Positions 12,901 to 39,779 of a stretch of 39,779 bases of DNA are shown piece by piece (positions within the stretch are counted from its first letter, which is position 1; each line of letters opens with the position of its first letter). The position numbers and the translations under genes were made by a program. This stretch comes from Octopus bimaculoides. Taxonomy: Eukaryota. The notes under the pieces were generated by a model. It saw nothing but the letters and a program-made list of their open reading frames with translations. It was not told where the DNA came from and did not search any database. The stretch covers positions 7,595,051 through 7,634,829 of the forward strand of contig NC_068991.1 in assembly GCF_001194135.2 (NCBI RefSeq), given 5' to 3'.

Positions 12901-15900
12901 TTGGTGGAATTTGAATTCAGAACATAGCAACAGGCAAAATACTGCTAAGCATTTCGTCCAGTGAGCTAACAATTCTGCCACCTCACAGGAATAGATGGAT
13001 AAAGGAAATAGGTATCACACCTGGTTTAGTACCGCTCCAGAAAACAGTGTTATTAGGAACAGGTAGAATACTTAGGATTGCTCTTGGCATCTAAAGTTAC
13101 TTGTTGTACCCAAATGTTAGAAATTTTTCTTTTCCAATAGTTTAATCTGTTGTACATTATATGAAATAATAATAAAGATAATTTTTATAAATATTTCAAA
13201 AACTAGACTAACCAATGTTTTAAAGCTCGATTTTTCACTTTAATTAGCAGAAGATAAAATTTTTTAAATGTTAAATAGTAATAAAGACTTGTGTACCCAA
13301 CATTTGTTACGAAATGAATGGCACATTCAGGAAAATGTATTGGATTTTATCAAAGCTTAAGAAAGTGCTTCGTTTTGAGATTAGAAGAAAGGGTTTATAT
13401 TGTGATGAATTCAAGCTTTACTACAGTTATTGTGTTTTGTCCACACTACTGCCTTCTCTAGTTTATTTGATAATGAAAAACAGATTCTAGTCCTACATTG
13501 CAGTTAAATGGTCTGTAGTAAAATAAGTGAAGGCGTGTGGCCTAGCGGTTAGGGTGTTGCACTTATGATCTCAAGATCATGGTTTCAATTCCTAGATTGG
13601 ATGGTGCATTGTATGCTTCATGGAAGCACTTCATTTCACATTACTTTGTGATCTCTTTAACGTCTGACATGTAACATACTGTTCACCTGTTCAGACAATA
13701 TTGATTTGATGGAAAAAGTGAGCTAATGTCCAGCAGAAACATTTGATCACAATAAACAAATCGTCTGTGCAGGTTATTCAGCAAAAAGTCGTGGAACCTT
13801 CATCCGTTATTTAAAAATAGGAGGATCCGCCAGTAAAAAACAAGTGTACCAACAAAAAACTGTCCCACCCTAACAAGAAGGGAAAAAAATGAATGTAAAA
13901 GATTTTAAATTTACTGAAATAAAACAAGGTTAAAGTAAGGATTTCTAAGCTTAAAACCAACCCGTCTACATTAATAACATTATTACTCACCTGTTTTCAC
14001 ATTCCAGGGAATTGGGTTTGATGAGATTCAAGTAATTGCTGTCAAAATCTTTAGAGAAGTCTTTCAACATTGACTGAATTTCACAATGAGAATAACAGAG
14101 TTTATTATGATACAAAATTTTGGTTATTGTTCCTAAAAGACTCATTGCGAAGGCCTGCAATATCTGGCTTGAGATAGAAACCTGTAGTTGTGTTCAAAAT
14201 AAAAAATAAATTTTCATAATTCCCAAATAGAAATGTCATTAAAAAAATTTTATTTTCATTTTCTTTTTTTTTTTAGTATTTATTTATCCATACTTGTATG
14301 AACAAATGATTTTCTTTTTTAAAGAAGTTATGACACAAATAGTACACCACAATATCAGCCAGTAATAACAAGGAACAGAAAGAAAATATCATCCAACATT
14401 GTACGGTGCCAGGCAAAAAGCACCGATGCTGGTAACACATTAGAAGTACCCACGCCAGTACCATGTAGGAAGCACTTGTGCTGGTGCCATACAAAAGGCA
14501 CTCAGTTCACTCTATAAAGTGGTTGGCATAATGCCATAGAAACTATGCCAAAACAGGCAACTGGAGCCTGGTGTAACTCCCCAGCTTGCCAGCCCCTATC
14601 AAACCATTGAACCGATGCCAGCATGGAAAATGGGTGTTAAATGATTATGGTGATAAGTGTCACCCTTAGAAATTGAAGGTGGATGATTTCAAGTGATTCA
14701 AATTTTAAATTAAAAATTGATTACATAATCTTAATATCAATTTCATAACACATATGATTGTTTCAAATAATATAAAATATATCTCTTGTGCAATAATTAA
14801 AAAAAAAAACAATTTCGGACATTAAAATGGCTAAAATGTCATGCTAAAATGAAAGGCTGTTTATAGATCTAAGAAAGAAAATATAGATTTGGTCTTACAT
14901 CTGATGGAGGCTTGCTTGATCTTTTAAGGAGTTCAATACAAGTTGAAATCAGTAAACTGATATCTTCAATGATGTGATCCCATAGGTTCCATTCAACATA
15001 TTTCAAGATGAGATGGCAGTAGATATGAAGGAGTTCTGTGTGATCCAACTGATGAAATACATTAGATATCATAAAATTAGTTATGAGTTTCTGTGGTTTA
15101 TCTATTAGCCATTAAAATCAAATAACTGGTAAAAGAAATGAAGTAGCTAACAAGAGAAAGAGAGAGGGAGGGAGAGAGAGGAACTGCTCTATTTTAAGCT
15201 TTGAAGATTTTCTATACATCATCAGTAATGTTTCTTGAGGTCATTAGGTGTTTTGGGTCTTTCAACACTAGACACCAATCTTGTGTTCAGTTAGCACTGC
15301 CCTTGGTAATACTGCTCCTTCCAGGGCCCACACCTCCTAATCCACAGCCAGCTTGAGGCAAACTCTGCTGCCTCCACAGACTTTCTGTCCGTCAACCTGA
15401 CCCCTGTGATGTCAAGCATGTTGTAAGCTCTGCAAAGGGATCGAGATTGGCCTACCAAACCCTCTGCATTCCATCTCAAAGTAAATAATATAACAAATAA
15501 ACTATCAGATGAAGGTGTGGGATATGTTACAAACTGTTCAATCACACAATTAAACAAATTAATACTTATTAGCAATTTCTTTTCTTCCTCATTTGGAAAG
15601 AATTTCATTTCGTAACTGGTTGTTTATTTATTAATTTTTGTTTTTTTACTTAATTAACCCTTTGTTTGTTCTATGTATGACACAGGATACACAGGACATA
15701 TTATCTTGGCATCTATGCATCGTATATAATAGACATTCCTAACTTTTTTCAACCACCAGAGAAAGATTTATACCACTCTGAATGTATCAAATGAGGGCTA
15801 AGTCTAAAAACAAGCACGGACATTTAAAACAGACAAGCAAAGGGTTCAGAGAACGCTTGACCCTTTAGCATTCAGAGACTTGGTCATTCACATGACTTGG

Positions 15901-24900: not shown

Positions 24901-27900
24901 ATATGCCTATTTGCGACATAGGTCGCATTTCCACTACGACTTAAAATGGTTAGACTCGAAGAGAAAATTGTCCGGCAATTCCCAATTAAATAGAAATTTC
25001 GTTTTCACTATGAAACACATAATGCTAGGTTTGCACACACACACCCCTTGAGACCCAACTATAAGGAACTGCCTGAGGATTCTACCCCCATAACCCTTCA
25101 GTGAACAGTTGACAGCAAGAATGGATGGACGGATGGATGGTTTGCAACTTAAATTTGCAGCAACAAAAAAAACAAAACTAAACATCTTAATATTGAAAAA
25201 TATATGTAAAACACTTCAATTTCTTATATTCTGCATTTTATCCAAGCTCTCTTTCTCAGAGCTTTCTGCTAGGGAGCAGTCTCCCTAAGAAGTGAGAAAT
25301 GGAATGGGTGTCAAGAAGAAAGGAATCTAATCATATGTTTATGTAAGAGAAGAAAAAAGAACTCTCTAGTTATAAGTACTAAACTTGTCTTTGTCCATGA
25401 AACACAATCAACAGAGCATAGCATACATCAACAAGCTACATACCTCCATTGTCTGTAGTGGCTTCCACAAGATTTGAGAAACGGGGAAGAAGAGGTTTTA
25501 TGATATGTACCTAAAAGAAATTGTAATCAGTAAATCAAATCAATAAGATTATCTCCCTCTCTCACACACACATAAATACACATATAAACTGCACAAAAGA
25601 AAAATAATTTAATTTTTCAAGCTTACTTTGTGGGAATATCACAGAACATATTTCATAGTTATATACCATTCCTTACTGTTGTAATACTTAGTGAATGAAT
25701 GCAATAAGCACAGCTCAAACTATAGCACGAGGGTACAGCAGATATAGCTTATCAGAACCCTCCATCTGGACCATTTGTTCAATTAACTTTTCAGCTGTAT
25801 ACTGAAAAATGTGCCATAGGTTTTCAAACTTTCAGCCTTTACTTTAGCATTTGGTCAAATTTTACCAACTGAATCAACAATCGTTTTATGAATGTTTACT
25901 TGTTGGTTGTTTTAAAATTGATTTTAAATACTAATAAGTGCCCCACCAGTTCTGCTTGAGCAAATACATAACATAAAGCAAGGCTGTCTTAGCAGCATTA
26001 GTGCTACCACCACCCCATTCTTGGCAAATCAATGCATTGTGCCCTATTGTATTTATTTACTGACAGCAAGCCACAGCATGCATGGATCAGGATTGGGGCC
26101 CTAAGCCCACAAGGCCCCTGAGCAAATCAGTACACTGGGGCCCTATAGTATTCACTAACAGAAAATTACAGCATACATAGGTCAGAATTGGGTCATTTCA
26201 ACATTGACTCCCCCCTGGGCAAATCAGTGCACTGGGTCCTATCATATTTCTTTATTGATCAGAATTGGGCTCTTAGGCAAATTACACTGGGCCCTATTAT
26301 ATTATTTATTGACAGCAAATTAATGCCCTGGAGCCCTGTCATATATATTTATTGACAGAAAACCACAGCCTTCGTAGATCAGAATTGGGCCCCTAAACCC
26401 ATGAAGTCCACAGGCAACTGCTTAGTGTTCCTATCTCTTATACAAGTAGCTGGTTAATGTATTCTGCCAGTGTCTTGTGACCACCCTGCCTTCGGCGACT
26501 ACATAGACTAAATTTCTTTACTGGTTGATAGCATGTTTGATGTAGTTATAATCATTACAGAGTTTAATCTGATTGGTGTAAAGAAACGAGAATGGTTTGA
26601 TACTAGATAATTCAAAGCATTGATGTTGCTAAGACTAGTGTAATATCGTTAATGTTTTAACATATTAGTGTTAATAATATCTCCATTAAACAGTAAGACA
26701 GGAAAAGGAATTCCTGGAAATGCTATTTCGGGTTTTAAATTCACAAGTAAAGTAAATTAGTGTAGCTCTGCCTACCAAAATAGAACTTTAAAAATGAATG
26801 TAAATGTAAGAGTGATTGTAATTATAAACTGGAATTTATTAATAAATATATACCTGTTTTTCTTCGAATATTTCAAACAGAATAATAAAATCGTCCCAAA
26901 GTTTTGTTAGTTGATGGGAATGTTGTTTGTCCCACCAAAATAATGGCACTTGATGACTTTCTGAAAGAGAACACTTCAAGTTTTCCTGAGTTTGATTGCA
27001 TAAATCAACAATTCGTTTTAATAGATATATAGACTGTTTTCTCGCTAGCGAATTATTTTGACTAAACCCCTGTTGCAATAAATTCCAGAAGAGCGGGTCA
27101 CAACGGAGATCTAGAAATTGTTTACTTTGAATATTCTGTTTAACAGGAAACCAAAAGTCAGCTAGAGAACATAGAATGGTCAGTGGTTTGCAGTTATAAA
27201 CTTCGTCTGAACATGTTTCAGTCTCCTTTAAAATGTCAGCAATAACTGCCCAAAGTGCTACAGCTTGTGAATAGTTATCGTCACAAGATCGTATCATATC
27301 TTTCAATAATGTACAACTAATCTGACCAACTAAGGTTTCATCAAAAACTTTGAAAGCTTCAATAAATACTGGGTACAGGCATTGGACAATTTCTCCTACG
27401 ATCGGAAATTCAAAATTGACAGCGGAGGCTTTCCTTAAAATTCTTTTTAAGGTTTCGATAACAATCCGAACATCAACAAACGTACATGTAATTTGATATT
27501 TACCAAAAGCAGTCGGGTTTTCGTGGATATAATGCAAAATCGACGTCTTAAACATATGAATGATGTTATTTTGGATTGAATGAGGGCACAAGTCTAGACA
27601 TAAAATAAAAACATCACAAAGCGGTGCTAGCTGTTCGTAAGGTATACTAAAACCGAGAGGTAAATGATGTTGAAATTGTAAAAGTTTTGAATAGAATTCA
27701 GTGACGATTTCACCTATAATAGGTTTAATCGCATCACTTGATACAACACATTCAATGTTTTTGTCTTGATATGTTTTAATTATCCGATCAAGCGAAGGTG
27801 TGGTTTGAACTAACTGCTCCATACAGGTGCTCGAAGATACACGTTTCGATATCCGAGTTAAGAGCTGTACAATGATATCTGTAACAAGAGAATGGTCGAT

Positions 27901-27972
27901 GGCATCACCAGAATCGTTCACTATATTTAGAGTCACTTGAAAAAGGTTTATTTCTGAATTGAGAATATCCAT
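864..27972 (-). CDS. TARBP1: tRNA (guanosine-18 2'-O)-methyltransferase TARBP1/Trm3 homologue, multi-exon gene span; 3' end lies beyond the left edge of the window
   Basis: The 23 exons listed below join in consistent phase with GT-AG boundaries. Peptides match remembered human TARBP1 in order, e.g. VHIIKPLLP (IHVIKPVLP), IRGATQCFL (LRGAAQCYL), [10 protein letters not shown] (NSLQHRVKNR), DFQKKIMPW (DVQKKIIPW), and [24 protein letters not shown]...[11 protein letters not shown] (SpoU motif). Comparison is from memory, not an alignment. Confidence 0.95.
1190..1458 (-). mobile_element. SINE family B (GAT-tailed)
   Basis: (atc)n tttaac...ttccatgctggcatgggttgga...ggatgcccttcctaacaccaacc. Confidence 0.7.
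1668..1856 (-). CDS. TARBP1: TARBP1 exon (APVLPN...DFQKKIMPW...VPNLG), start of the SpoU domain
   Basis: cttttaaaag acceptor, gtaaag donor, phase 1 to 1. Confidence 0.92.
2188..2377 (-). CDS. TARBP1: TARBP1 exon ([18 protein letters not shown]...KIS)
   Basis: ctctttgtag acceptor, gtatgt donor, phase 0 to 1. Confidence 0.9.
2820..2901 (-). CDS. TARBP1: TARBP1 exon ([27 protein letters not shown])
   Basis: ttattccag acceptor, gtaagt donor, phase 2 to 0. Confidence 0.9.
3001..3680 (+). mobile_element. SINE family A, split by the hAT MITE
   Basis: Head ggacatggctgtgtggtta; tail ...tttgactaaac|ccttcaagg continues across the MITE. Confidence 0.75.
3328..3610. mobile_element. hAT (Buster/Charlie-type) MITE nested in a SINE
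   Basis: TIRs cagggctggccaa and ttggccaggcttg; 8-bp TSD gactaaac (3320..3327) / aactaaac (3611..3618). Confidence 0.85.
4235..4623. mobile_element. TTAA-type MITE interrupted by an inverted duplication and a SINE fragment
   Basis: ttaa|cccttcagcattc start; aaatgctaagagg end; shared internal sequence tcacattgtttt...catgcattatctc. Confidence 0.6.
4357..4414. repeat. 58-bp near-perfect palindrome
   Basis: acattgtaggataggtgtgagaggctgga|tccagccttgcacacctatcctacaatgt; arms differ at 2 positions. Confidence 0.95.
4663..4847 (-). CDS. TARBP1: TARBP1 exon (TKFYESAF...[10 protein letters not shown]...FTDD)
   Basis: ttgtttatag acceptor, gtaagg donor, phase 0 to 2; resembles NHNFSVRLYA. Confidence 0.92.
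5869..5955 (-). CDS. TARBP1: TARBP1 exon ([20 protein letters not shown]...ELEQ)
   Basis: ttgctttcag acceptor; donor CAG|gttctt is weaker; phase 0 to 0. Confidence 0.8.
7191..7340 (-). CDS. TARBP1: TARBP1 exon (SNQEFVW...QPSVR...LKFP...QYQT)
   Basis: ttatttgcag acceptor, gtaagt donor, phase 0 to 0. Confidence 0.92.
7950..8139 (+). mobile_element. SINE family B
   Basis: gcacccactacactc...ggaagggcatccagctgtag...gcatggaaagcggacgttaaacgacgatgatgatg. Confidence 0.8.
8172..8622 (+). mobile_element. Two tandem SINE family C copies
   Basis: Two roughly 215-nt copies separated and flanked by caatattt...tcaatattt. Confidence 0.7.
8702..8936 (-). CDS. TARBP1: TARBP1 exon (FSKCDIEVR...[10 protein letters not shown]...FILE)
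   Basis: gtgttgcag acceptor, gtaagt donor, phase 2 to 0. Confidence 0.92.
9259..9330 (-). CDS. TARBP1: TARBP1 exon ([23 protein letters not shown])
   Basis: ttattttaag acceptor, gtaagt donor, phase 2 to 2. Confidence 0.9.
9823..9919. repeat. About 97-bp direct repeat, copy 1
   Basis: caaacgataatataatat...cagaaatatttcagg...aaaatgacattgg, repeated at 10945..11041. Confidence 0.9.
9963..10135 (-). CDS. TARBP1: TARBP1 exon (NSELILQIG...[12 protein letters not shown])
   Basis: ctttgctag acceptor, gtaggt donor, phase 0 to 2; resembles ACIFGTVFRRDQR. Confidence 0.9.
10945..11041. repeat. About 97-bp direct repeat, copy 2
   Basis: Few differences from 9823..9919. Confidence 0.9.
11370..11420. repeat. 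(TA)n-rich microsatellite
   Basis: Direct reading. Confidence 0.85.
11682..12005 (+). mobile_element. SINE family A
   Basis: Same head, (TG)n middle and tail. Confidence 0.75.
12072..12257 (-). CDS. TARBP1: TARBP1 exon (VASESTY...MNVAW...KFLQE)
   Basis: cgtaatag acceptor, gtaatg donor, phase 0 to 0. Confidence 0.9.
12469..12703 (-). CDS. TARBP1: TARBP1 exon ([16 protein letters not shown]...NDIAQ)
   Basis: tttttaacag acceptor, gtaaaa donor, phase 2 to 0. Confidence 0.9.
12733..12785. repeat. (AAT)n/(GAT)n microsatellite
   Basis: Direct reading. Confidence 0.8.
12788..12975 (-). mobile_element. SINE family C
   Basis: Reverse complement of the family C consensus. Confidence 0.65.
13531..13660 (+). 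mobile_element. tRNA-like SINE head of a further family
   Basis: ggcgtgtggcctagcggttagggtg...ggtttcaattcc. Confidence 0.5.
13991..14181 (-). CDS. TARBP1: TARBP1 exon ([13 protein letters not shown]...ECEN)
   Basis: actacag acceptor, gtgagt donor, phase 0 to 2. Confidence 0.9.
14400..14655 (+). mobile_element. SINE family B (degenerate)
   Basis: Same body and tail as 7950..8139. Confidence 0.65.
14899..15048 (-). CDS. TARBP1: TARBP1 exon ([10 protein letters not shown]...KPPSD)
   Basis: tttcatcag acceptor, gtaaga donor, phase 0 to 0. Confidence 0.85.
15213..15480 (-). mobile_element. Decayed 3' end of a HERO-like RLE non-LTR retrotransposon
   Basis: EMECRGF, frameshift, then [18 protein letters not shown]...[18 protein letters not shown]. 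Downstream gaaagacccaaaacacctaatgac...actgatgatg resembles a HERO 3' UTR (from memory). Confidence 0.7.
15861..16096. mobile_element. TTAA-type MITE, same family, opposite orientation
   Basis: ccctttagcattc ... aaatgctaaagaa|ttaa; internal sequence shared with 18375..18594 and 4235..4623. Confidence 0.7.
16168..16286 (-). CDS. TARBP1: TARBP1 exon (DELQREEND...YEIEC)
   Basis: tttcatttcaag acceptor, gtaagt donor, phase 1 to 0. Confidence 0.85.
16562..16920 (-). mobile_element. SINE family E (degenerate)
   Basis: gagcctgctcgtgaaattaacatgcaagtggctgagtactccacag is the reverse complement of 28655..28700. Confidence 0.7.
17010..17240 (+). mobile_element. SINE family C (well preserved)
   Basis: ggcgagctggcagaaacgttag...gagttcaaattcc...gtcgactttgcctttcatcc. 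Confidence 0.8.
17522..17782 (-). CDS. TARBP1: TARBP1 exon ([11 protein letters not shown]...EEFGM)
   Basis: ctattttag acceptor, gtaagt donor, phase 1 to 1. Confidence 0.9.
17864..18267 (+). mobile_element. Two tandem SINE family C copies
   Basis: Two roughly 190-nt copies separated and flanked by caatatttatgtYagtat. Confidence 0.7.
18375..18594. mobile_element. TTAA-flanked MITE (piggyBac-like termini)
   Basis: ttaa|cactttagcattt ... aaatactaaaggg|ttaa. Confidence 0.75.
18874..19072 (-). CDS. TARBP1: TARBP1 exon (TLVTPSEW...[11 protein letters not shown]...YLKD)
   Basis: ctaatcag acceptor, gtaagt donor, phase 0 to 1. Confidence 0.9.
19663..19759 (-). CDS. TARBP1: TARBP1 exon (EIVVTCQ...[19 protein letters not shown])
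   Basis: caacag acceptor, gtaagt donor, phase 2 to 0. Confidence 0.9.
20597..20732 (-). CDS. TARBP1: TARBP1 exon ([10 protein letters not shown]...[14 protein letters not shown]...IVNIR)
   Basis: ttttttag acceptor (phase 1), gtaaat donor (phase 2). An alternative phase-2 acceptor exists about 56 nt upstream. Confidence 0.85.
21259..21670. mobile_element. hAT (Buster/Charlie-type) MITE
   Basis: TIRs cagtgattccca and tgggaaccactg; 8-bp TSD ctataaac (21251..21258) / ctgtaaac (21671..21678). Confidence 0.85.
21720..22245. other. Assembly gap
   Basis: Run of N. Confidence 1.
22246..22613 (+). mobile_element. SINE family B with internal tandem repeats; 5' part lies in a gap
   Basis: Repeated gccagtgcccctggactg...gtgcgggtggcacat...gagcgtggccgtt units, then the family B tail. 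Confidence 0.8.
23320..23520 (+). mobile_element. SINE family B whose tail ends a few nt from a TARBP1 splice donor
   Basis: Family B body and gatgat tail ending about 23520; donor at 23526. Confidence 0.65.
23527..23579 (-). CDS. TARBP1: TARBP1 exon ([17 protein letters not shown])
   Basis: ttttattgtag acceptor, gtatgt donor, phase 0 to 2; resembles FIIGPLMDALSESSLYSR. Confidence 0.8.
23705..24015 (-). mobile_element. SINE family A (degenerate)
   Basis: Reverse complement of family A body and tail. Confidence 0.65.
24251..24396 (-). CDS. TARBP1: TARBP1 exon (FLLHSSWLL...WQDQES)
   Basis: ggtag acceptor, gtgagt donor, phase 1 to 0. Confidence 0.9.
24771..25050. mobile_element. Degenerate hAT/Charlie-like MITE
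   Basis: 5' end caggggtggggaaaccccagcccgcaggc; 3' end ttgcacac(ac)nccccttg; upstream gtcTAcaa; right TSD not clear. Confidence 0.55.
25444..25510 (-). CDS. TARBP1: TARBP1 exon ([22 protein letters not shown])
   Basis: tttcttttag acceptor, G|gtatgt donor, phase 0 to 1. Confidence 0.9.
26023..26400. repeat. Degenerate minisatellite
   Basis: Several imperfect units of gcaaat...actgggccctat...tttattgacag...gatcagaattggg. Confidence 0.65.
26854..27972 (-). CDS. TARBP1: TARBP1 coding exon 1 (MDILNSE...FEIFEEKQ), 1119 nt
   Basis: Long ORF 26839..28023. First ATG at 27972, acceptor-like ttttcggaaaatatag at 28024, donor CAG|gtatat at 26853. The start codon is uncertain. Confidence 0.85.
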
Positions 27973-28374
27973 GGCTTTAATTTTTATGAAGTATTCACAA
28001 CACAAAATATATTGTAAACACACCTATATTTTCCGAAAATAAATATAAAATGAAAACTAGTAATTAGTTTTCATACTTTATAATCATAACAATAGTAAAT
28101 TCTTTTCAATCAACAGAAGCTTGGTTAGGAGAAAAACAAATTAAAATACGCAACACGTGTATCACAAGGTACGTGTACCTTAAATAAGTGTGGCACACGT
28201 TGCTAACCATGTGGTGGAACTCTTCAGCGTGAAGATTAGAATTAAACAGACTTCCGTCTTTCCAGCAACAACAATAATTGGTTTAAGCTGTTTTGTTATT
28301 GACACAAGTCCGCTGCATTGATGATGTTGATAAGTAGCCTCGCCTAGTTTTACTTTAAGCAGACGACTAATGAC

Positions 28375-28760: not shown

Positions 28761-29435
28761 TCGCGATATAAAAGTGTCGATACGAAAAAGAAAACTCGAC
28801 TTAAAAGCAAAAGATTGTGGTAATATGTTATCGTCACCACATCCACGGCTCGAATTGTGTATTAAATAACAGTTTCAAAACGAACATCAGACATTGTTGA
28901 AAGATCTGTTCGTTTTCCCCCGTATTTTATTTGCCGTAATTCTGGCGGAGACAAAATAAGTGCCCATAAAATTCAGATAATTGCTTTAACGATATCATTT
29001 CAATGGTATTGAATTCATATATTAGATAATGCCAAACTATAGTGCCCCAACATGACCGCAGTCCATTGACTGACGTAAACGATAAAAAAATTTTAAAAAC
29101 CTTTGTGTCTGCCTTGCTAAATAACACAATGCTTCGCTGAGAATACACACACACAATACACATGTGTGTGTCTGTTTGCATAATAATCTGCTTTAATATG
29201 GTATTCTTTATTCAAACATTTCAATATATTCAAGCATTAAAAAGAGCAGAAGGAATATTGTTTAATTTATTAAACAATTCATCTTCTTTTGATTAAAAAT
29301 TTATTACATAAAAAAATGATCAATTCATTAAGTTACAATTTTTTTCCTCAATTTTATTTTTTAACATTTTACAGACAATGACAATGTCACATCATTGTCC
29401 TTCGTTATGTATTCTTATCTAAACGAACATTAGTT

Positions 29436-29690
29436 CTAGACCATTGTTTCTGAATCTGAGATCCTGAGCTGGAGTTCTTTAGGTTTTTTGAGAGCCCAGA
29501 TGACCTCATCTTCAATAACGGGTTCCCTTGTAACTTCAAGCTGTTTTGCTGTCTGGTCAGCTCCTGTGAGAGTATCAGATGACTCGGGGTGATTTAGAGT
29601 CACTGTGAAGTATTCCACCCAGCATGTATATTCCTCCTTCTATCAGCAAGATCTACACATTCTTATCTTTTCGAATACAACATATTCTAC
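29436..29690 (-). mobile_element. Decayed RTE-like LINE fragment (linker between endonuclease and RT)
   Basis: RKDKN...(frameshift)WVEYFTVTLNHP...EPVIEDEVIWALKK resembles KDKNG...RWKEYFEELLN...ITEEEVRKALKK. Confidence 0.5.
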
Positions 29691-29826
29691 ATATCAGACA
29701 AAAAAACCATGCAAGTTAGAACTTGATCTTTTGCCTCTTGACTTGAAGGTTCTGATTCCTCAGAGGAGTAAAGAACTTCAGGTTTTTTATAGTCTACCAA
29801 GGTTTGCAGCAGTATTTATTTTATTT

Positions 29827-31428
29827 TTATCTGGTTACTTTTAAAATTGCATTCTTTTTCTTTGTGGTCCTTATTTTCATTGCTGTTTTAGTATCCTGTC
29901 TTGTTCTCAGCTTTTGTTTCCCTTTCGGAAGGTCATTTTTTCTTGTTTTTATTGCTTGTTGTTTGGCTTTCAAGAGATTATATAATTTTTTCTGAGTTAC
30001 CAAGGGGTCTTTCTTGGCTCGGTTATATTTCAATTTCAGTTGCCTGCTTTCTTCTTTCTTTAAATGCAGTTTTAACAGCTTCCAACAATGATACACAACA
30101 TCATCACATGGAAGACTGACCTCAAAGTTTCTTCTGTATAAGATTTGTTCATCAGGACTAAGTGTTGTCTCTATTGCCTCAAGAGCTAAAAGCACTTTGG
30201 ACTTCATTGGTGAATGTTGAGGTGTAATGACCTCAGAGTTACTTTGACCATTCAAAGATGAAGTTCCACTGCTTTGCAAAATTGATGTAATCACAGAGGA
30301 AGAAATAGGTTGTGGTGATAGCAACATTGATTCTTTGGAAGTGGATGCATTTTTTAATTCAAACGGATTAAAAGATAAAGCTTCCTCAAGTTCAGTCTCA
30401 TTACTTTTATTAGATACATTTAAAACTGGAGAAGATGCTACCAGCTGAGAAGTTAATCCATGGTGCATATCAGATAATGAAATTGTAGAAACATCTAAAT
30501 CAGTGATAGATGTTGTTGAAATGTCAGTAGCCTCATTGTCAAAATGTTGATTTAAGGGCCAGATACCAGCACATGCAAAGTTACTTACAATGGATAATTC
30601 ATTTAAAGCATTTATATGAGCTTTCTTGAAAACTCTAGCAAAAGTTATTTTATCAACAGAAACACCGTTAGTTCGGATCCATTCTTCACATGCTTGCAGC
30701 CACTTGGCTTTCAATGGTCCCACATATATATTGGTCAAAGGTTGTAGAATTTGATTGCAACGTGATGGCAAACAAAAAAGAATAACATTGTTTACTTTGC
30801 ACAAAGTGCTACAAGAAATATCTTTATGCGATTTATGACCATCCAACAACAATACAACATTACTCCGATTTTCAAGGGTTGGGAGAGATGGAATGAAACA
30901 ATCTTTCAACCACGAGTAAAATGTGTTTTGTGTCATTCCTCCACAATCTGAATGAATAGCTTTTGTACCAGCTGGGAGATCAATCGTTATAGAAACACTG
31001 AAAGACTTAGCAGGGTACACAACAAAAGGTGAAAGGGTTCTTCCGTCAGCACATATTGCCATCAGTACAGTTATTTGTGAATAGCCTGGAGAAGTTAAAT
31101 GATAGTCGTCTTTCATTAAGACATCCGTTGCAAGTTTTCCAGTCTTTGTATGCAATGGAAAGCTAATCTCATCACAGTAATAGATTTGTTCAGATTGTGT
31201 AATGTCTTCTTCCAAAAGCATTTCTTGGAAGCGTTTAAACCAGTCACGTGTACGATTTTCTTTTGTGGTCATTGTTTTATTGACCTTCGATTTGTTGATT
31301 GAACCTATATTTAGATCTTGGTGTCTTGACATAAATCCATACAACCATGACTTTCCTGGTAGATTATCCATGAACATATCAACTTTCCATTCACATTGAT
31401 CCAGATATTGTTTGACACATTGCCGAAT
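29827..31428 (-). CDS. Transposase-derived gene exon 3 (rest of HTH, DDE_1, Ser/Thr-rich linker, basic tail)
   Basis: tttttctataatag acceptor (phase 0) extends ORF 29827..31377 by 17 codons. AATAAA follows the stop codon immediately. Confidence 0.9.
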   Translation of the reverse strand: MRQCVKQYLDQCEWKVDMFMDNLPGKSWLYGFMSRHQDLNIGSINKSKVNKTMTTKENRTRDWFKRFQEMLLEEDITQSEQIYYCDEISFPLHTKTGKLATDVLMKDDYHLTSPGYSQITVLMAICADGRTLSPFVVYPAKSFSVSITIDLPAGTKAIHSDCGGMTQNTFYSWLKDCFIPSLPTLENRSNVVLLLDGHKSHKDISCSTLCKVNNVILFCLPSRCNQILQPLTNIYVGPLKAKWLQACEEWIRTNGVSVDKITFARVFKKAHINALNELSIVSNFACAGIWPLNQHFDNEATDISTTSITDLDVSTISLSDMHHGLTSQLVASSPVLNVSNKSNETELEEALSFNPFELKNASTSKESMLLSPQPISSSVITSILQSSGTSSLNGQSNSEVITPQHSPMKSKVLLALEAIETTLSPDEQILYRRNFEVSLPCDDVVYHCWKLLKLHLKKEESRQLKLKYNRAKKDPLVTQKKLYNLLKAKQQAIKTRKNDLPKGKQKLRTRQDTKTAMKIRTTKKKNAILKVTR

Positions 31429-33171
31429 CTATTATAGAAAAAAGAAACAAATTTCACTTATTTTTTTTATTTTCAATCAAGTAAAATTAACCATTCCTAA
31501 CAAATGTTATCTTTAAAAAAAATTTAATTTTCTACACAATAGTATAAGTGCAGGCATGGCTGTGCGGTTAAGCAGCTCATTTTGCAACACCACAGTTTCA
31601 GGTTCAATACCACTGTGCAACACCTTGGGTAAGTGTCTTCAACTATAGCCCCAGGTTAACCAATGCCTTGTCATTGAACCTGGTAGATAAGAATTGTGGA
31701 AGTCAATCATATACACACACATACATAACCACACGCACACACAGATAAACACATGCACACACACACATGGGGGAGTGTCTTTGTTTGTTCTCCCACCACT
31801 TGACAACTGGTGCTGGTTTGTTTATATCCCCATAGCTTAGCTAAAGACTGATAGAATAAGTATCGGACTTAAAGAAAAAAACAAGTACTCAAGTCAATTT
31901 GTTTGATTAAACCCTTCAAGGCAGTGCCCCAGCTTGGCCGCAGTCCGGTGATTGAAATAAGTAAAAGATAAAAGATAAAATATCATGAATAAATTTAAGA
32001 TAAATAGGAAACATACCGCCTCCCCCGTTAACTTAAATCCATATTTTGACATATCTTTGATCCAGCACTTCAAACATTTCTCTTCTTCTTTCGTTAGTAC
32101 AGGTCTTGGGCCTCTGACAGGCAAAGCTGTTCTTTTTCCTAAAGAGAATATAAATGTTGTCAGGGTAGAAATGCAAATAAGATCCAAGAATTAGATTAAA
32201 TTAAATTCGTTTGGGTTATTTCATGACTAAGTGAAGGTGTGGATATGTGGTACGAAGTACAGAAATATTTCAACCAACCCAGAAGAAATCTTAAACATTT
32301 CATTATTTTGGATGCAAAATAAAGGCGTGAGTGGCTGTGTGGTAAGTAGCTTGCTTACCAACCACATGGTTCCGGGTTCATTCCCACTGCGTGGCACCTT
32401 GGGCAAGTGTCTTCTACTATAATCTCGGGCCGACCAAAGCCTTGTGAGTGGATTTGGTAGATGGAAAACTGAAAGAAGCCCGTCGTATATATGTATANNN
32501 NNNNNNNNNNNNNNNNNNNNNNNNNNNNNNNNNNNNNNNNNNNNNNNNNNNNNNNNNNNNNNNNNNNNNNNNNNNNNNNNNNNNNNNNNNNNNNNNNNNN
32601 NNNNNNNNNNNNNNNNNNNNNNNNNNNNNNNNNNNNNNNNNNNNNNNNNNNNNNNNNNNNNNNNNNNNNNNNNNNNNNNNNNNNNNNNNNNNNNNNNNNN
32701 NNNNNNNNNNNNNNNNNNNNNNNNNNNNNNNNNNNNNNNNNNNNNNNNNNNNNNNNNNNNNNNNNNNNNNNNNNNNNNNNNNNNNNNNNNNNNNNNNNNN
32801 NNNNNNNNNNNNNNNNNNNNNNNNNNNNNNNNNNNNNNNNNNNNNNNNNNNNNNNNNNNNNNNNNNNNNNNNNNNNNNNNNNNNNNNNNNNNNNNNNNNN
32901 NNNNNNNNNNNNNNNNNNNNNNNNNNNNNNNNNNNNNNNNNNNNNNNNNNNTTATATTATATTTGATCCTTTATATTGAACACTCAATATTTCATCTACA
33001 TTCAATACTTTCTTTCATGGTGCCATCCATTTTTATTTTATTTTATATTATATATTGTATATTATATTATATATTGTATATTCCATATTCTATACCCCAC
33101 ATTGGTTCTGCAGGAATATAAATAAAACATAAAAAACAGACAGCGTTGGAACTCTTTTAAACAAAATAATA

Positions 33172-33248
<77 letters not shown>

Positions 33249-33479
33249 TTGTGTGTCTGTGTTTGTCCCCCCAACATCGTAAATTTTAAGAATACATCTT
33301 ATATATTGACAAGAGGTGAAACATCACCTACCCGAAATTCTATCAGATAATGTTGATTTTGGTATGTTATAATGCAAAGATGCCTTTCTTAGAGTCATTC
33401 CAGCTTTAACTGCTGTTACAGCTGCTTTCATGGTCTCGTCAGTGTAGGATAACTTGTGTGTTATCCGACGTCCAGGCAT
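29827..33479 (-). CDS. pogo/Fot-like transposase-derived protein, 623 aa (psq-HTH, CENP-B-like HTH, DDE_1), three coding exons, probably domesticated
   Basis: complement join of 33332..33479, 32017..32138 and 29827..31428 gives 1872 nt with no stop or frameshift. Motifs YCDE (D176), LLLDGHKSH (D286) and LQPLT (T322, normally LQPLD). Confidence 0.88.
31551..31975 (+). mobile_element. SINE family A in intron 2 of the transposase-derived gene
   Basis: Head caggcatggctgtgcggttaag, (CA)n, tail aaacccttcaaggcagtgccccagc. Confidence 0.8.
32017..32138 (-). CDS. Transposase-derived gene exon 2 (KRTALPVRGPRPVLTKEEEKCLKCWIKDMSKYGFKLTGEA)
   Basis: ctctttag acceptor (phase 1), gtatgt donor (phase 0). 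GPxPVLTxEEE...W...GF is the typical start of the CENP-B-like HTH. Confidence 0.88.
32325..32497 (+). mobile_element. SINE family A (well preserved) in intron 1 of the transposase-derived gene, running into a gap
   Basis: ggcgtgagtggctgtgtggtaagtagc...gaaagaagcccgtcgtatata. Confidence 0.85.
32498..32951. other. Assembly gap
   Basis: Run of N. Confidence 1.
33172..33245. repeat. (TA)n(TG)n microsatellite
   Basis: Direct reading. Confidence 0.95.
33332..33479 (-). CDS. Transposase-derived gene coding exon 1, psq-type HTH (MPGRRITHKLSYTDETMKAAVTAVKAGMTLRKASLHYNIPKSTLSDRIS)
   Basis: Not in the ORF track because it is under 60 aa. Typical MSIRKAAxxYNIPKSTLxDR pattern. G|gtaggt donor in phase 1; acceptor ttttacttag just upstream at 33513. 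Confidence 0.85.
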
Positions 33480-33815
33480 ATTGAAGGAGTAAAATCAGCA
33501 GACAGACCAATTCTAAGTAAAATAAATAATGAAAATAATCACATCCAGTAATAATTCAGTCTGCGGATCTTTTTTAAAACGGGGGCCACATTTTTCATTA
33601 ACGAAACACTTTGAAACTTGGAACACTGGTAGAATGTGTCATATAAAACATCTTTTTCTCTTAGTCTTCTTTAAAAAAAAAGAAATCCATAAATTATTCC
33701 ATGTTAAAGTTGTCGTATTTCTGTAATTTCAACCAATCACTGACGTCCATTCAGCCGATATACATTAAGTGCCGACTACATAAACAAACGATTCTGAAAC
33801 AATTAACCCTATCCC

Positions 33816-33841
33816 TAACCCTAACCCTAGGGTTAGGGTTA
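33816..33841. repeat. Perfect 26-bp palindrome built from TTAGGG units
   Basis: taaccctaaccct|agggttagggtta, preceded by a degenerate ttaaccctatccc. Confidence 0.95.
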
Positions 33842-33931
33842 AAGCAAACTTAAAATGAAAAAAGCAAATAAAACGAAGGTATGGAGATTAAATACGCTTT
33901 ACATCGCTTAATGAGCCAAAGGAGTAAAGGT

Positions 33932-34438
33932 NNNNNNNNNNNNNNNNNNNNNNNNNNNNNNNNNNNNNNNNNNNNNNNNNNNNNNNNNNNNNNNNNNNNN
34001 NNNNNNNNNNNNNNNNNNNNNNNNNNNNNNNNNNNNNNNNNNNNNNNNNNNNNNNNNNNNNNNNNNNNNNNNNNNNNNNNNNNNNNNNNNNNNNNNNNNN
34101 NNNNNNNNNNNNNNNNNNNNNNNNNNNNNNNNNNNNNNNNNNNNNNNNNNNNNNNNNNNNNNNNNNNNNNNNNNNNNNNNNNNNNNNNNNNNNNNNNNNN
34201 NNNNNNNNNNNNNNNNNNNNNNNNNNNNNNNNNNNNNNNNNNNNNNNNNNNNNNNNNNNNNNNNNNNNNNNNNNNNNNNNNNNNNNNNNNNNNNNNNNNN
34301 NNNNNNNNNNNNNNNNNNNNNNNNNNNNNNNNNNNNNNNNNNNNNNNNNNNNNNNNNNNNNNNNNNNNNNNNNNNNNNNNNNNNNNNNNNNNNNNNNNNN
34401 NNNNNNNNNNNNNNNNNNNNNNNNNNNNNNNNNNNNNN
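33932..34438. other. Assembly gap
   Basis: Run of N. Confidence 1.
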
Positions 34439-36059
34439 GGACCACCCCCATCCCCCAGCTACGCTAGTGCCTTTACTAAAAGACCAACTGATTTTAAGGT
34501 GGGGATTTCGTGAAATATAAAAATGTTGCTTACCGCGAACTTCTCGCCTGTGCATTAAGGCGTTTTGGGCCGGTTTTCAGCGCCAAAATATATTTAAGTT
34601 ACGAGTGGGAAATTAAAGTAAAAGACGACAAAACTATTATTTAACAATAATTGATATTGATTTTACTGTAAAAATGTTCTTTTTATTTAATTATTTATTT
34701 TGTCAAAGAAAATTGCAAACTGATAACTTAATTACACATACTTAAGTTTCGGATTAATTTTCGCAACTCCAGTAAAAGTAATTAGTTATGAATAAATCGA
34801 ACTCAGACAATTTTAAGCTTTTCTCTCTATGCATAAAATAGTAAATATAAATTGAGCAATTAGAAAAAAATTTGTAAACAGTGAAATAAACCAAACATAA
34901 AATTTAATGACTTCTTTGTTCCTGCTTTTATCAAAACGTGGAACTTTCTTGCAGACTCTGATCCACAGGCCTACCTGTGGATTCAGGTGGTTCCTAGAAT
35001 TGGTGTTGATTAACAAAAGAGAACTGAATCCAGTCCCACAAGCCCGTCGTTGTAAATGAAATGACACAACTTGAGGAAATAATCTCTTAATAAAGTTCTT
35101 GGTGTGTTTAATACAATGCAATTATTTTGAGTTGATTAACGATTTAATTTTGAAAAGTGAATTTAATAAACTGTGTCACAATCCCATGAAATTCCATCTC
35201 GCACAACACCTGGGGTGCACGTACTCCAAGTTGAGAACCCTTGATTTTTATACAGATTTGTCGCCACGAATAACAATCACATTAAAGAAGAATTTTGCTC
35301 ATTTCCATTCTATTGCACGGCAAAAACTTTAGAATAAAAATAAGCTGAGCCTACCAGTATGCGGACATAAGATGTTTCCAAATCTGGCACTGCTACTGTT
35401 CTGTGCTAGATAGATATTTTTTGTATATTAAATAAACGAAGTAGATGCTGTCATAGAGAATATATAATCATAATAACAGCCTTAGCTGTATGACGAAAAC
35501 CATAATTCTTCCGTGTCGGTAATTCGACCGGTGTGCGAACCGCGTCACCAGTTTGCGGACATCCACCTAAGAATACATTAAAACTCTTGCGATCACCTTT
35601 GCCCTGAAATAAATGAGAGCGTATAATATTATTAATTTTAATACACATGCAAGTAACCGAATAAATTTCTTGAATATGTAAGATATAATCAATAAGTATA
35701 ATCATACATCTTAGTTGTTTACCATTAAAACAATTTAGTTATTAAAAATTGCGCTGTATATATTCTGTATTAAGAATTAAATGCGTTAATCAAACTGATT
35801 TATTCATTTTAAAGAACATATAAAGTAAAATCCTTATTTATTCTCATCCCAATGAAAAGTAATAACTCATCTTATTTTGAATATCAGAAGTTTGTCGGGG
35901 CGGGGGACAGAGTGTGCCTGTTACAAGTGGAGTTCTCAAGAAATGAATAGTTCTAAATAGGGATAGTTATTAAAGGATTCCTTAATCGTTAAAGATTACA
36001 GCTGAAGTATAAGTTCATCAAAGTAGAAAAAGAAAATTTCATGGTACAAACATATTTGG

Positions 36060-36902
36060 ACACTGGAGGAATTGGACTTGTCTGCTCCTGAGAAGGTGGA
36101 GGACTGTCGGAGTCAGAGAGCTTGGGACAACATAATTTCGAAGGCCATCTTCGATTCCCTCTTCATCCAGTCGGACCAGTTTTCAAGGTGTCGCTTACTG
36201 TCTGCTAGCGTCAAATATTCAGGTGACTGGATTGATGCCATCCCTGTGGCTAATGTTGGTGGCCTACTCAGCTTGGACGAACTTTGTGTATCCATTGCCC
36301 TCAGAGTGGGAGCTGACGTATGCACGGGTTTGATCTGTCGTTGTGGCAGGTTCCTCGACTCCACAGGCCTTCATGCATCATACGGAGTTGAACCTGATAC
36401 TCAAAAGGAGCTCGGACCAGGCAAACATCCCCTTCATCTTGGAACCATATGGATTCTTCTGATGTGACAGGAAGAGACCCAACGGCCTCACCCTGTGCTC
36501 CTGGTCACATCCTTGTCTGGGATGTCACAGTTAGTGACTCCTTTGCTTCTTCTCACATNNNNNNNNNNACATCCTTGTCTGGGATGTCACAGTTAGTGAC
36601 TCCTTTGCTTCTTCTCACATCCTGGATGCTGCATTCAGGGTGAGATCACAGCTTCTGTGGTTGAGCGGAACAAAATCTTGAAATACCGCAATCTGTCGGC
36701 CAACTACATTTTCCATCCTGTGGCATTTGAGACATTTGGTGGGGTCAGACCACTAACTGCAAGATTCCTGTCTTCACTGGCAACTTGCCATGTAGAGGTA
36801 ACTGGTGAGGCTCGTGAGGGCACTTGGCAGTTCCAGCGCATCAGCTTTGCCATCACCCGCGGCAACACTGCAAGCATGCTGGTGTGTCTCAATAACCATT
36901 AG
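36060..36902 (+). mobile_element. Decayed 3' fragment of an RLE-type (CRE-like) non-LTR retrotransposon
   Basis: GDWIDAIP...IALRVG...CRCG...LDSTGLHA, KRPNGLTL, LVWDVT, KY..., PVAFETFG and FQRISFAITRGN across frameshifts and a stop; followed by a T-rich tract. Confidence 0.8.
36559..36568. other. 10-N gap with a duplicated 52-nt overlap on either side
   Basis: 36507..36558 is identical to 36569..36620. Confidence 0.95.
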
Positions 36903-37752
36903 AGAGGTTTCCCAGTGCCCCCAACTTTTCAACCCAAGGTGGTGAATTGTTTTTTTCTTTTTCTCTTTTTCCTTTTTCTCTTTTTTTCTTCTTTTTTCTT
37001 TTTAATTTTTTCAATTGAGTTCTCTGTTTTGTCCAGTTTTCTAGATTGATTTTTTAAAACAGTAAATAGTGTGAAGGCAATAAAAAGTATATTCTACTAC
37101 TTCAGATTCCTGTAGATGAGCAAAATGGAAAAGAGGATGTAATATTCTCTGAGGGTATCAAGACTACGCACAACTTCAGGTCAAATTTGACAATCAATTC
37201 TCTCAATATTCCCGTTCCTCACTTGATCATTTTCACAGCTTCCTTTATTTAGACTCATATCTCTGATAATTACTGACCCTCTACACCCAAACACAGTAGC
37301 CAAAGCAGTTCAGATCTGGATATCACACAACCCCTAGGGCTAAATTTCTGCCTATCAACTCAACGTTCACTTTAGTTACATTGATGTGATTGTAATTATC
37401 TTTCTTCCTAAGCCAGGCCACATCCTCAACTTCAGCATCATTGCCACTGTCCTTTCTTCAATTTTCTTTGAAACTCCTTAGTGGAAATCTAGTCCTATTT
37501 GAAATTAGTTAATATGAACATGTCTAATATAGAAAACTTAACAACTGATAAATATCTTCTCTTAGTTAAGTAGGTTAACTCAACAAATGAAAATATTTTC
37601 CTGAAATGATAAGATCAGTTTTGAAACACAAGACAGCAGCTGGTAGTTCACAGTAATGATAAACTATAATTCACAGTTAAGCAGAGAAGAAAAAAAATGG
37701 AAAAGAACTGCAAAATAAGCCCCACAAAAGAATTTTTATTCTAGGTTTTTAA

Positions 37753-38799: not shown

Positions 38800-38940
38800 G
38801 TTTCTTTCTACCAAATTCACTCACAAGACTTTGGTCGGCCCAAGGCTATAGTAGAAGACACTTGCCCAAGGTGCCACACAGTGGGACTGAACCTGGAACC
38901 ATGTGGTTGGGAAGCAAGCTTCTTATCATACAGTCATGCC
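38800..38940 (-). mobile_element. SINE family A
   Basis: Near-identical to 28..178. Confidence 0.8.
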
Positions 38941-39779
38941 TAAGCCTGGTGCTTATTTTATCAGTCTCTTATGTCAAATCACTAAGTTATGGAGACACAA
39001 ACACATCAACACCAGTTGTTAAGCATTAAGTGGTGGTGGGGGGGCGAATATACAAACACACATCTGATTGAATCCTCTTTGCGTCAATATGTACTTCCTT
39101 GCGATAATATAGCCTTTAATCTAATTAAGATATCCTTGACCTGAAGAGTATCCAGCAGTACACACCTCGCTTGGATTTTACCATTTCTGAGGTTCCACTT
39201 GCTATGAAACATATGTAGCCCGGATTTTCCATACTCCATTCTGTAACTCTAGTATTCTTTTTCACACACTCAGCAGCCTTGGTTGCCTACCATGGAATAT
39301 AAAAAAGAACTTTTTTTTTTAGCTCATCGTTCTCCAATAAGGAAAAATAATCCGCAACCTTCCATCTCTCAATAAACCACTAGTGTTCCTGAAAGTTGTT
39401 TTCTTTATATTCACTACGGATTGCTTGAAGCTAACTTTCTTCCTACACCTTGATCCCTGGTTGGGAAGCAAGCTTTTTACCACTCAGACACGCTTGTAAA
39501 CAATTTCAAAATGAACTTTCAGCTTCAAAGAAAAACATTCTTCTACTTCTGTTTCATTGCTGAGTTTAATGGAGTACTACCAAACGTAAAATTATTTCTA
39601 TCTAATCTGCCAAACTTCAGTAGTTTCACTTTCTGGATCATAAAACGAAACATTGCTCAATTAAAAAATAAACACTAACAACAGAAAGTTATGAAAAAAC
39701 GAAAACAATAAATGCTTTGGGAAAAAACGTGTTGCATTTATTGTATATTATTGCTTACAATTTTCTTTTTTTTTTTTTT

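Follow-up and report, generated by a model that had tools for sequence, protein, structure and literature searches.

New DNA-binding proteins have arisen again and again from domesticated transposases. CENP-B, Abp1, JRK and the TIGD proteins are thought to act as non-catalytic DNA binders with a scaffold-like core, and the genomes of cephalopods are large and repeat-rich and have many lineage-specific regulators. Here we describe LOC106874873, a gene on the minus strand of a 39,779-nucleotide stretch of the Octopus bimaculoides genome (NCBI RefSeq assembly GCF_001194135.2, contig NC_068991.1, positions 7,595,051 to 7,634,829). This whole stretch is called the window and its coordinates are used throughout. 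An earlier reading made from the letters alone (the original prediction) had proposed that the gene is a domesticated pogo/Fot transposase with a broken catalytic triad. Our analysis makes it very probable that LOC106874873 is a domesticated host gene of the genus Octopus that arose from one pogo-superfamily transposon copy.

The domesticated pogo genes of vertebrates are TIGD1-7, JRK, JRKL, CENPB, POGK and POGZ; they derive from complete or nearly complete transposases, have Ka/Ks ratios (nonsynonymous to synonymous substitution) of about 0.05-0.2, and include triads such as DD34S in TIGD2, DD30N of the TIGD type and DN35D in POGK (Gao et al. 2020, PMC7386202). The octopus gene resembles them in having an N-terminal pair of helix-turn-helix (HTH) domains followed by a DDE_1 domain, in its lack of terminal inverted repeats (TIRs), in being stationary and syntenic, and in a triad that is altered at one position. 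Its counterparts to the vertebrate values are DD35T and a dN/dS of 0.20-0.26. Unlike the vertebrate genes, it represents an independent event in a mollusc lineage and comes from a source clade with a C-terminal PHD finger. No Pfam match to CENP-B_N was found in the octopus protein at E <=0.1, its first HTH being of the psq type and not CENP-B_N or BrkDBD, and we found no orthology to any vertebrate gene, the best identity outside Octopus being <=41%. The gene therefore stands outside the CENP-B/TIGD/JRK group.

Fot and Fot-like elements are defined by HTH_psq plus HTH_Tnp_Tc5 and a DD35D triad in the scheme of Gao et al. 2020 (PMC7386202), who reported no Fot-like elements from animals; the DD35D pogo groups are groups 33-40 in the scheme of Dupeyron et al. 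2020 (PMC7325037). The octopus protein is like the DD35D Fot and Fot-like pogo transposons in its HTH_psq, HTH_Tnp_Tc5 and DDE_1 domains and in the 35-residue spacing of the second and third catalytic positions. Unlike these transposons, the octopus gene is without TIRs, is single-copy by protein searches, contains introns and has Thr at the third position. The 'Fot' label of the original prediction is apt in domain type (psq plus Tc5) and in DD35 spacing, and in those respects only. SETMAR (Metnase, DD34N) offers another comparison, being a domesticated Tc1/mariner-type transposase in which the third acidic residue has been replaced and a structural match to the model of the octopus protein; it differs in belonging to the mariner branch and in being fused to a SET domain, whereas the octopus gene is of pogo type. 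Residual nicking activity is known for SETMAR.

The gene has been catalogued before. XP_014778256/LOC106874873 appears under HTH-PSQ, as transposon-derived, in the supplement of Mukherjee and Moroz 2023 (PMC10027918), who described pogo-derived Psq genes as domesticated independently in Octopus with a family-level Ka/Ks <1. The main text of that paper mentions neither 'catalytic' nor 'synteny', and no mention of the locus and accession names was found in the main texts of the literature. The suggestion that the gene was undescribed does not stand, as it is annotated by NCBI and listed in that supplement; it is an ordinary example of a well-known kind, already annotated and catalogued. What is new here is the set of orthologues and their synteny, the estimates of selection, the shared Asp to Thr change, the inferred loss of a PHD finger, the C-terminal motif and the intron structure. 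These make it a clean non-vertebrate case, with evidence for domestication at the level of the gene, a datable loss of the catalytic Asp and the PHD finger, and introns that were apparently acquired. It is worth having as a thoroughly documented case and as a candidate for functional study, and it establishes no new principle.

An intact gene at one locus in three Octopus species

LOC106874873 is a conserved and intact gene at a single locus; its DNA-binding part is its most constrained region and its catalytic triad is incomplete. The domestication put forward in the original prediction is borne out by synteny, by dN/dS, by the absence of TIRs, by the lack of a close paralogue in protein sets and by a Thr at the third catalytic position that is common to three species. 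The gene is built as follows.

33480..33514, minus strand: 33-nt 5' untranslated region (33512-33480), preceded by AG at 33514-33513, the putative acceptor of an upstream non-coding exon
33332..33479, minus strand: coding exon 1, with ATG at 33479-33477; aa 1-49 and the first base of codon 50; start of HTH_psq
32139..33331, minus strand: intron 1, GT..AG; holds the assembly gap 32498-32951, microsatellites and a ~165-nt interspersed repeat at 32329-32496
32017..32138, minus strand: coding exon 2, 122 nt; end of HTH_psq and start of HTH_Tnp_Tc5
31429..32016, minus strand: intron 2, GT..AG; interspersed repeats common to the O. sinensis orthologue
29827..31428, minus strand: coding exon 3; aa 91-623 and the stop codon TAA at 29829-29827
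29815..29825, minus strand: two overlapping AATAAA hexamers (29825-29820 and 29820-29815) directly past the stop codon; candidate poly(A) signal by sequence

Joined, the exons give an in-frame coding sequence (CDS) of 1872 nt that specifies 623 amino acids and a stop, and both introns have a GT donor and an AG acceptor. The window shows no mismatch to chromosome record CM046611.1 of assembly GCA_001194135.2. The protein is 100% identical from end to end to NCBI XP_014778256/XP_014778257 (LOC106874873, 'uncharacterized protein', Octopus bimaculoides). The three phase-consistent GT-AG exons of the original prediction are thus those of the NCBI model, and the AATAAA that it placed after the stop is present as two hexamers. 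The acceptor that it read at 33513 exists in the sequence as a candidate: the AG at 33514-33513 and all 33 nt from there to the ATG are identical in the three Octopus species.

An assembly gap of 454 N (32498-32951) lies wholly within intron 1. At the orthologous loci, L001 in O. sinensis and L003 in O. vulgaris, the sequence is free of N and shows these same three exons (148 nt, 122 nt and a long last exon) joined at the same GT-AG junctions; an exon identical to exon 1 lies at L001 10001-10148 in O. sinensis, and another is found in O. vulgaris. The junction of exons 1 and 2 is spanned by the HTH_psq match, and relatives, including intronless ones, read DRISGR/K without interruption at this point. 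Given the gap-free orthologues and this continuity across the junction, no exon is missing, no coding sequence lies hidden in the gap and the reading frame can be trusted.

The O. sinensis orthologue is a protein of 636 aa with 89% identity, and that of O. vulgaris differs from it by only 6 nt; both introns are at conserved positions in the three species. Orthologues were found within the genus Octopus only. In O. bimaculoides, O. sinensis and O. vulgaris alike, the gene lies next to TARBP1, which is downstream and has the same orientation. Collinearity with the O. sinensis locus extends to either side of the gene, over window 37576-23461. With the RDH-like gene, a short-chain dehydrogenase/reductase (SDR), upstream in O. 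bimaculoides, this is the arrangement in which synteny was to be looked for.

The window, the O. sinensis locus and the O. vulgaris locus hold one copy of the gene each. A word-indexed search of 5.8 billion proteins returned only the Octopus orthologues above 33% identity, and when 1.84 billion cluster representatives were scanned in full with HMMER no protein outside the octopus cluster exceeded 41% identity; neither set contains a close paralogue. As the original prediction had noted, there is no TIR pair: none that flanks the gene was found in the window or in L001, where the matches were microsatellites and one AT-rich 26-nt pair at 77%. This inverted pair (29810-29835/33506-33531, one arm starting with CAGT) was rejected as a TIR on the grounds that it overlaps the stop codon, falls within the would-be ancestral open reading frame (ORF) and is at noise level, 49 such pairs being found in 7.3 kb. 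The TIR motif of the relatives, GGTTATCGAC, had no match in the window at up to 1 mismatch.

Purifying selection on the coding sequence

The coding sequences of O. bimaculoides and O. sinensis align over 1869 sites and differ at 127 of them, divided among the three codon positions as 30/27/70. The corresponding dN is 0.040 and dS is 0.16-0.20; their ratio is 0.20 by the method of Nei and Gojobori (NG86; bootstrap interval 0.14-0.29), 0.26 by YN00 and 0.25 by maximum likelihood. The check on dN/dS that had been proposed with the original prediction therefore yields 0.20-0.26, with a bootstrap interval that excludes 1. In a neutral simulation the observed transitions and transversions were placed randomly on the CDS in 5000 runs. 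The mean expectation was 87 amino-acid differences against the 54 observed, 0/5000 runs gave a number as low, and only 1% were without stop codons.

In the introns and flanks that can be aligned, 9.1% of sites differ and 34 indel events occur in 3.8 kb, mostly not multiples of three. The proportion of nonsynonymous differences (pN) in the CDS is 0.039 compared with 0.091 in alignable non-coding DNA (P = 5e-15), and only 2 indels fall in the CDS (3 and 36 nt, both in frame), where about 17 would be expected (P = 9e-6). Constraint varies along the protein, with dN/dS values of 0.12 in the DNA-binding region, 0.20 in the catalytic domain, 0.15 in the C-terminal 123 residues (aa 501-623) and 0.57 in the Ser/Thr-rich linker 381-500.

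Synonymous divergence is about twice that of alignable non-coding DNA (pS 0.173 vs 0.091; P = 2e-7; window 29110-37207). Possible reasons for the high pS are a bias towards transitions, the content of CpG or a choice of non-coding blocks that happen to be conserved; the excess leaves the verdict on the gene unaffected.

DNA-binding domains and an altered catalytic core

The psq-type HTH, CENP-B-like HTH and DDE_1 domains of the original prediction all exceed their Pfam gathering cut-offs: HTH_psq covers residues 13-53, and HTH_Tnp_Tc5 covers residues 66-130 with 34.1 bits against a cut-off of 22.2. The features that follow them are given below; column percentages come from an alignment of 146 non-octopus relatives, of which 145 have a residue in the T322 column.

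31171..31173, minus strand: codon GAT of D176, first catalytic Asp, in the YCDE motif; kept, Asp in 94% of relatives
30577..31077, minus strand: DDE_1 (RNase H-like) domain, aa 208-374; Pfam E 8.6e-18, 65 bits against a cut-off of 22
30937..30939, minus strand: codon of G254, in GGM at 253-255 instead of GWM; Trp in 87% of relatives
30841..30843, minus strand: codon GAT of D286, second catalytic Asp, in the LLLDGH motif; kept, Asp in 97% of relatives
30733..30735, minus strand: codon ACC of T322, third catalytic Asp position, in QPLT; 35 residues from D286, Asp in 92% of relatives
30064..30210, minus strand: C-terminal helical motif, aa ~497-545, SPMKSKVLLALEAIETTLSPDEQILYRRNFE..VYHCWKLLK (also given as ALEAIETTLSPDEQILYRRNFE..VYHCWKLLK); found by BLASTP to P0105, P0015, P0017 and P0021

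The protein thus has D176, D286 and T322 and lacks a complete D, D, D acidic triad. The replacement of QPLD by QPLT 35 residues after D286 and of GWM by GGM had both been noticed in the original prediction, and both hold against the alignment. The residues QP that precede T322 are conserved, and H288, H291, Q319 and P320 are kept. The same ACC codon is present in O. sinensis and O. vulgaris, giving Thr in all three species, so the change from Asp to Thr predates the species split and is not a read error. Further near-invariant residues of the core are replaced in O. bimaculoides and O. sinensis, i.e. W254G, N174Y, P280N, K206Y and F326V/A.

DDE/D enzymes need all three acidic residues for metal-dependent catalysis and, to our knowledge, the loss of any one of them abolishes transposition in DDE/D transposases. 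With the third of the three residues replaced by Thr, transposition activity has likely been lost, as judged from sequence.

The AlphaFold model was built from 13 sequences and has a mean pLDDT (the model's per-residue confidence score) of 63, with values of 70-92 across most of the HTH region and the core. Its predicted fold is a Tc1/mariner-like RNase H fold with strands and helices in the expected order: the first strand would bear D176, the fourth would end at D286, and T322 would stand where the long helix after the fifth strand begins. The best structural matches of the model in the PDB are the catalytic domains of Mos1, SETMAR and Sleeping Beauty (probability 1.00, E down to 4e-8); a sequence search of the PDB with the octopus protein gave no match. 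The Ser/Thr-rich linker 381-500 is predicted to be disordered, helices are predicted at residues 501-563 and the protein ends in a basic tail.

A 36-nt tandem duplication (RDTKTAMKIRTT twice) is present in this basic C-terminal tail in O. sinensis and O. vulgaris and absent in O. bimaculoides. It lies at L001 ~14786-14857, which matches the window 29860-29900 region, and the NCBI isoform X2/X3 (P0163) is without one copy.

Relatives and origin

The nearest relatives are transposase-like proteins scattered among the tunicate Styela clava, a crinoid, a sea urchin and gastropods, at <=41% identity; such a patchy taxonomic distribution is typical of transposons. A mobile relative, P0008 (locus L006), has an intronless ORF of 1938 nt with QPLD intact. 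Its element occupies L006 2843-5675 (2.8 kb), and has 26-nt TIRs with 96% identity and TA at both outer ends; the P0008 protein is clustered with 37 near-identical copies. Subterminal TATTATCGACCAG repeats are present in this element, the GGTTATCGAC motif recurs in L004, and the relatives at L004 and L005 have short CAGT-type inverted repeats without TA flanks.

In a neighbour-joining tree made up only of proteins found by these searches, the octopus pair sits next to Styela P0015 in 35/40 bootstraps, within a small group that includes P0016 and P0017. P0015 and P0016 end in a PHD finger that is above the Pfam cut-off, and the closest transposon relatives (P0015, P0016, P0021 and P0010) share a C-terminal PHD finger and an unnamed helical C-terminal motif. 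The octopus protein has the helical motif in common with these transposons and is without the PHD finger. By our inference, the gene began as a PHD-bearing pogo element that landed upstream of TARBP1 and then lost its ends and its PHD finger. The two introns were probably gained after insertion, given that there are intronless relatives.

A relic of a PHD finger past the stop codon, suggestive by eye (CLIC..., ..LH..), was rejected: tblastn with nine PHD-bearing relatives found no match, and a hidden Markov model made from 15 PHD tails scored only negative in all three species. The idea that Biomphalaria P0014 is an old orthologue from the molluscs was likewise set aside: two tandem units account for its high score, its identity is only 32% and it did not group with Octopus. 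This protein (P0014/P0165, Biomphalaria glabrata LOC106063552) is 1143 aa long and consists of two tandem pogo-like units, both with QPLN instead of QPLD, and it may be a separate domesticated lineage. QPLN is also found in P0026, P0058 and P0113.

A proposed role and its alternatives

The explanation that we favour as a whole, and think probable, is that a fixed pogo copy was kept for a cellular function as a DNA-binding nuclear protein whose core is likely dead. Such a copy of a single DNA transposon would have become fixed and then been retained, keeping almost all of the ancestral transposase: the pair of psq and Tc5/CENP-B-type HTH domains, the DDE_1 domain, the disordered Ser/Thr-rich linker, the helical C-terminal motif and the basic tail. 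It would have lost its inverted repeats, its C-terminal PHD finger and its third metal-binding Asp (now Thr), with changes to several near-invariant residues of the core, and the protein would most likely be unable to cut or join DNA. The basic tail points to a nuclear location, where the two HTH domains would read specific DNA while the dead core and the C-terminal helices would provide a scaffold for self-association or for the binding of partners; the targets might be remnants of the parent element. That the protein is specifically a non-catalytic DNA-binding factor is a narrower proposition, to which its sequence lends somewhat better than even credence.

Some of our observations count against this explanation. 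The estimates of selection come in essence from a single pair of species, O. bimaculoides and O. sinensis, as O. vulgaris is only 6 nt away from the latter. The copy-number searches covered annotated and predicted proteins, and annotation pipelines mask repeats. Near-invariant columns are changed in 9/35 cases in the core compared with 1/17 in the DNA-binding region; this contrast falls short of significance (Fisher P = 0.14). The core still has two of its three acidic residues and much of it is constrained (dN/dS 0.20), and on the strength of the sequence this leaves room for some residual enzymatic role.

The gap of 454 N that separates exons 1 and 2 might indicate that the gene model is an artefact, with an exon hidden in the gap or three ORF pieces brought together from different transcripts. 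We give this almost no credence: exons and junctions are no different at the gap-free orthologous loci, the HTH_psq match and the motif DRISG followed by K/R run unbroken over the exon 1/2 junction, as in intronless relatives, and independent NCBI models agree in two species. A transposon copy that was fixed, immobile and decaying neutrally, its ORF intact by chance, would be in keeping with a CDS nucleotide identity (93.2%) only slightly above that of the introns and flanks (~91%). It is made very improbable by the concentration of differences at third codon positions (30/27/70), by a dN/dS of 0.20-0.26 whose interval excludes 1, by the mere 1% of neutral simulations that stay stop-free, by the presence of 2 in-frame CDS indels where ~17 are expected and by an ORF that is intact in three species. 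Nor does the complete transposase ORF, which retains the two DNA-binding domains and all but one of the three Asp residues, make the locus a pogo element that is still autonomous and mobile with an unusual third catalytic residue. That would be extremely hard to reconcile with the same chromosomal position and collinear flanks in three species, with no TIRs being found, with two introns that carry old repeat insertions and with protein databases in which no other copy exceeds 41% identity.

A domesticated protein might instead have kept part of its chemistry, nicking or cleaving DNA with an incomplete triad in repair, replication or programmed DNA processing. The retention of D176, D286, H288, H291, Q319 and P320, the clear constraint on the catalytic domain (dN/dS 0.20) and the full RNase H-like fold of the model are all compatible with this, and human SETMAR (DD34N), which is reported to nick or cleave, provides a precedent. 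We nevertheless think it quite unlikely, as Thr has taken the place of the third metal ligand in each of the three species, the core has the replacements W254G, N174Y, P280N and F326V/A, and the loss of any acidic residue is established as abolishing transposition. Constraint on a dead core is, moreover, seen in other domesticated pogo genes, e.g. TIGD2 with DD34S and POGK with DN35D (PMC7386202). Returning to a DNA-binding protein with a dead core, a more specific and unlikely proposal is that it is a regulator particular to the octopod lineage, derived from the PHD-bearing pogo clade, which binds dispersed miniature inverted-repeat transposable elements (MITEs) left by its parent and so wires a lineage-specific gene network or silences transposons. 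By analogy with SETMAR, a weaker variant of this proposal would have some nicking retained. Transposon silencing is a function of the Abp1/Cbh proteins of fission yeast.

Neighbouring genes and repeats

The genes on either side are:

26839-28023, minus strand: TARBP1, large first coding exon (SpoU-type methyltransferase gene), ~1.8 kb past the stop codon
37753-38706, plus strand: SDR gene (adh_short), intronless, 317 aa; upstream in O. bimaculoides, divergent, ~4.3 kb from the ATG

The original prediction saw short interspersed nuclear element (SINE) insertions in both introns. Interspersed multi-copy repeats are indeed present there; the SINE label is plausible and unproven, as an Rfam scan of the window gave no match and did not tie the intronic repeats to a tRNA-type SINE. 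The ~165-nt interspersed repeat (window 32329-32496, 16-179, 38800-38947 and others) has at least 8 copies in the window and 5 in L001, with neither an Rfam nor a tRNA match. No match to reverse transcriptase was found among the window ORFs of >=110 aa. Intron 1 of the O. sinensis orthologue has ~1.6 kb without a counterpart in the window outside the gap, and at L001 10639-10925 it contains a MITE-like inverted repeat of 111 nt with 84% identity and a 65-nt spacer.

A telomere-like palindrome, in which (CCCTAA)n is placed head-to-head with (TTAGGG)n, is found at window 33803-33840, ~330 nt upstream of the ATG of the gene. It is not present at the O. sinensis and O. vulgaris loci, and a further short (CCCTAA)2 is located at window 3812-3823.

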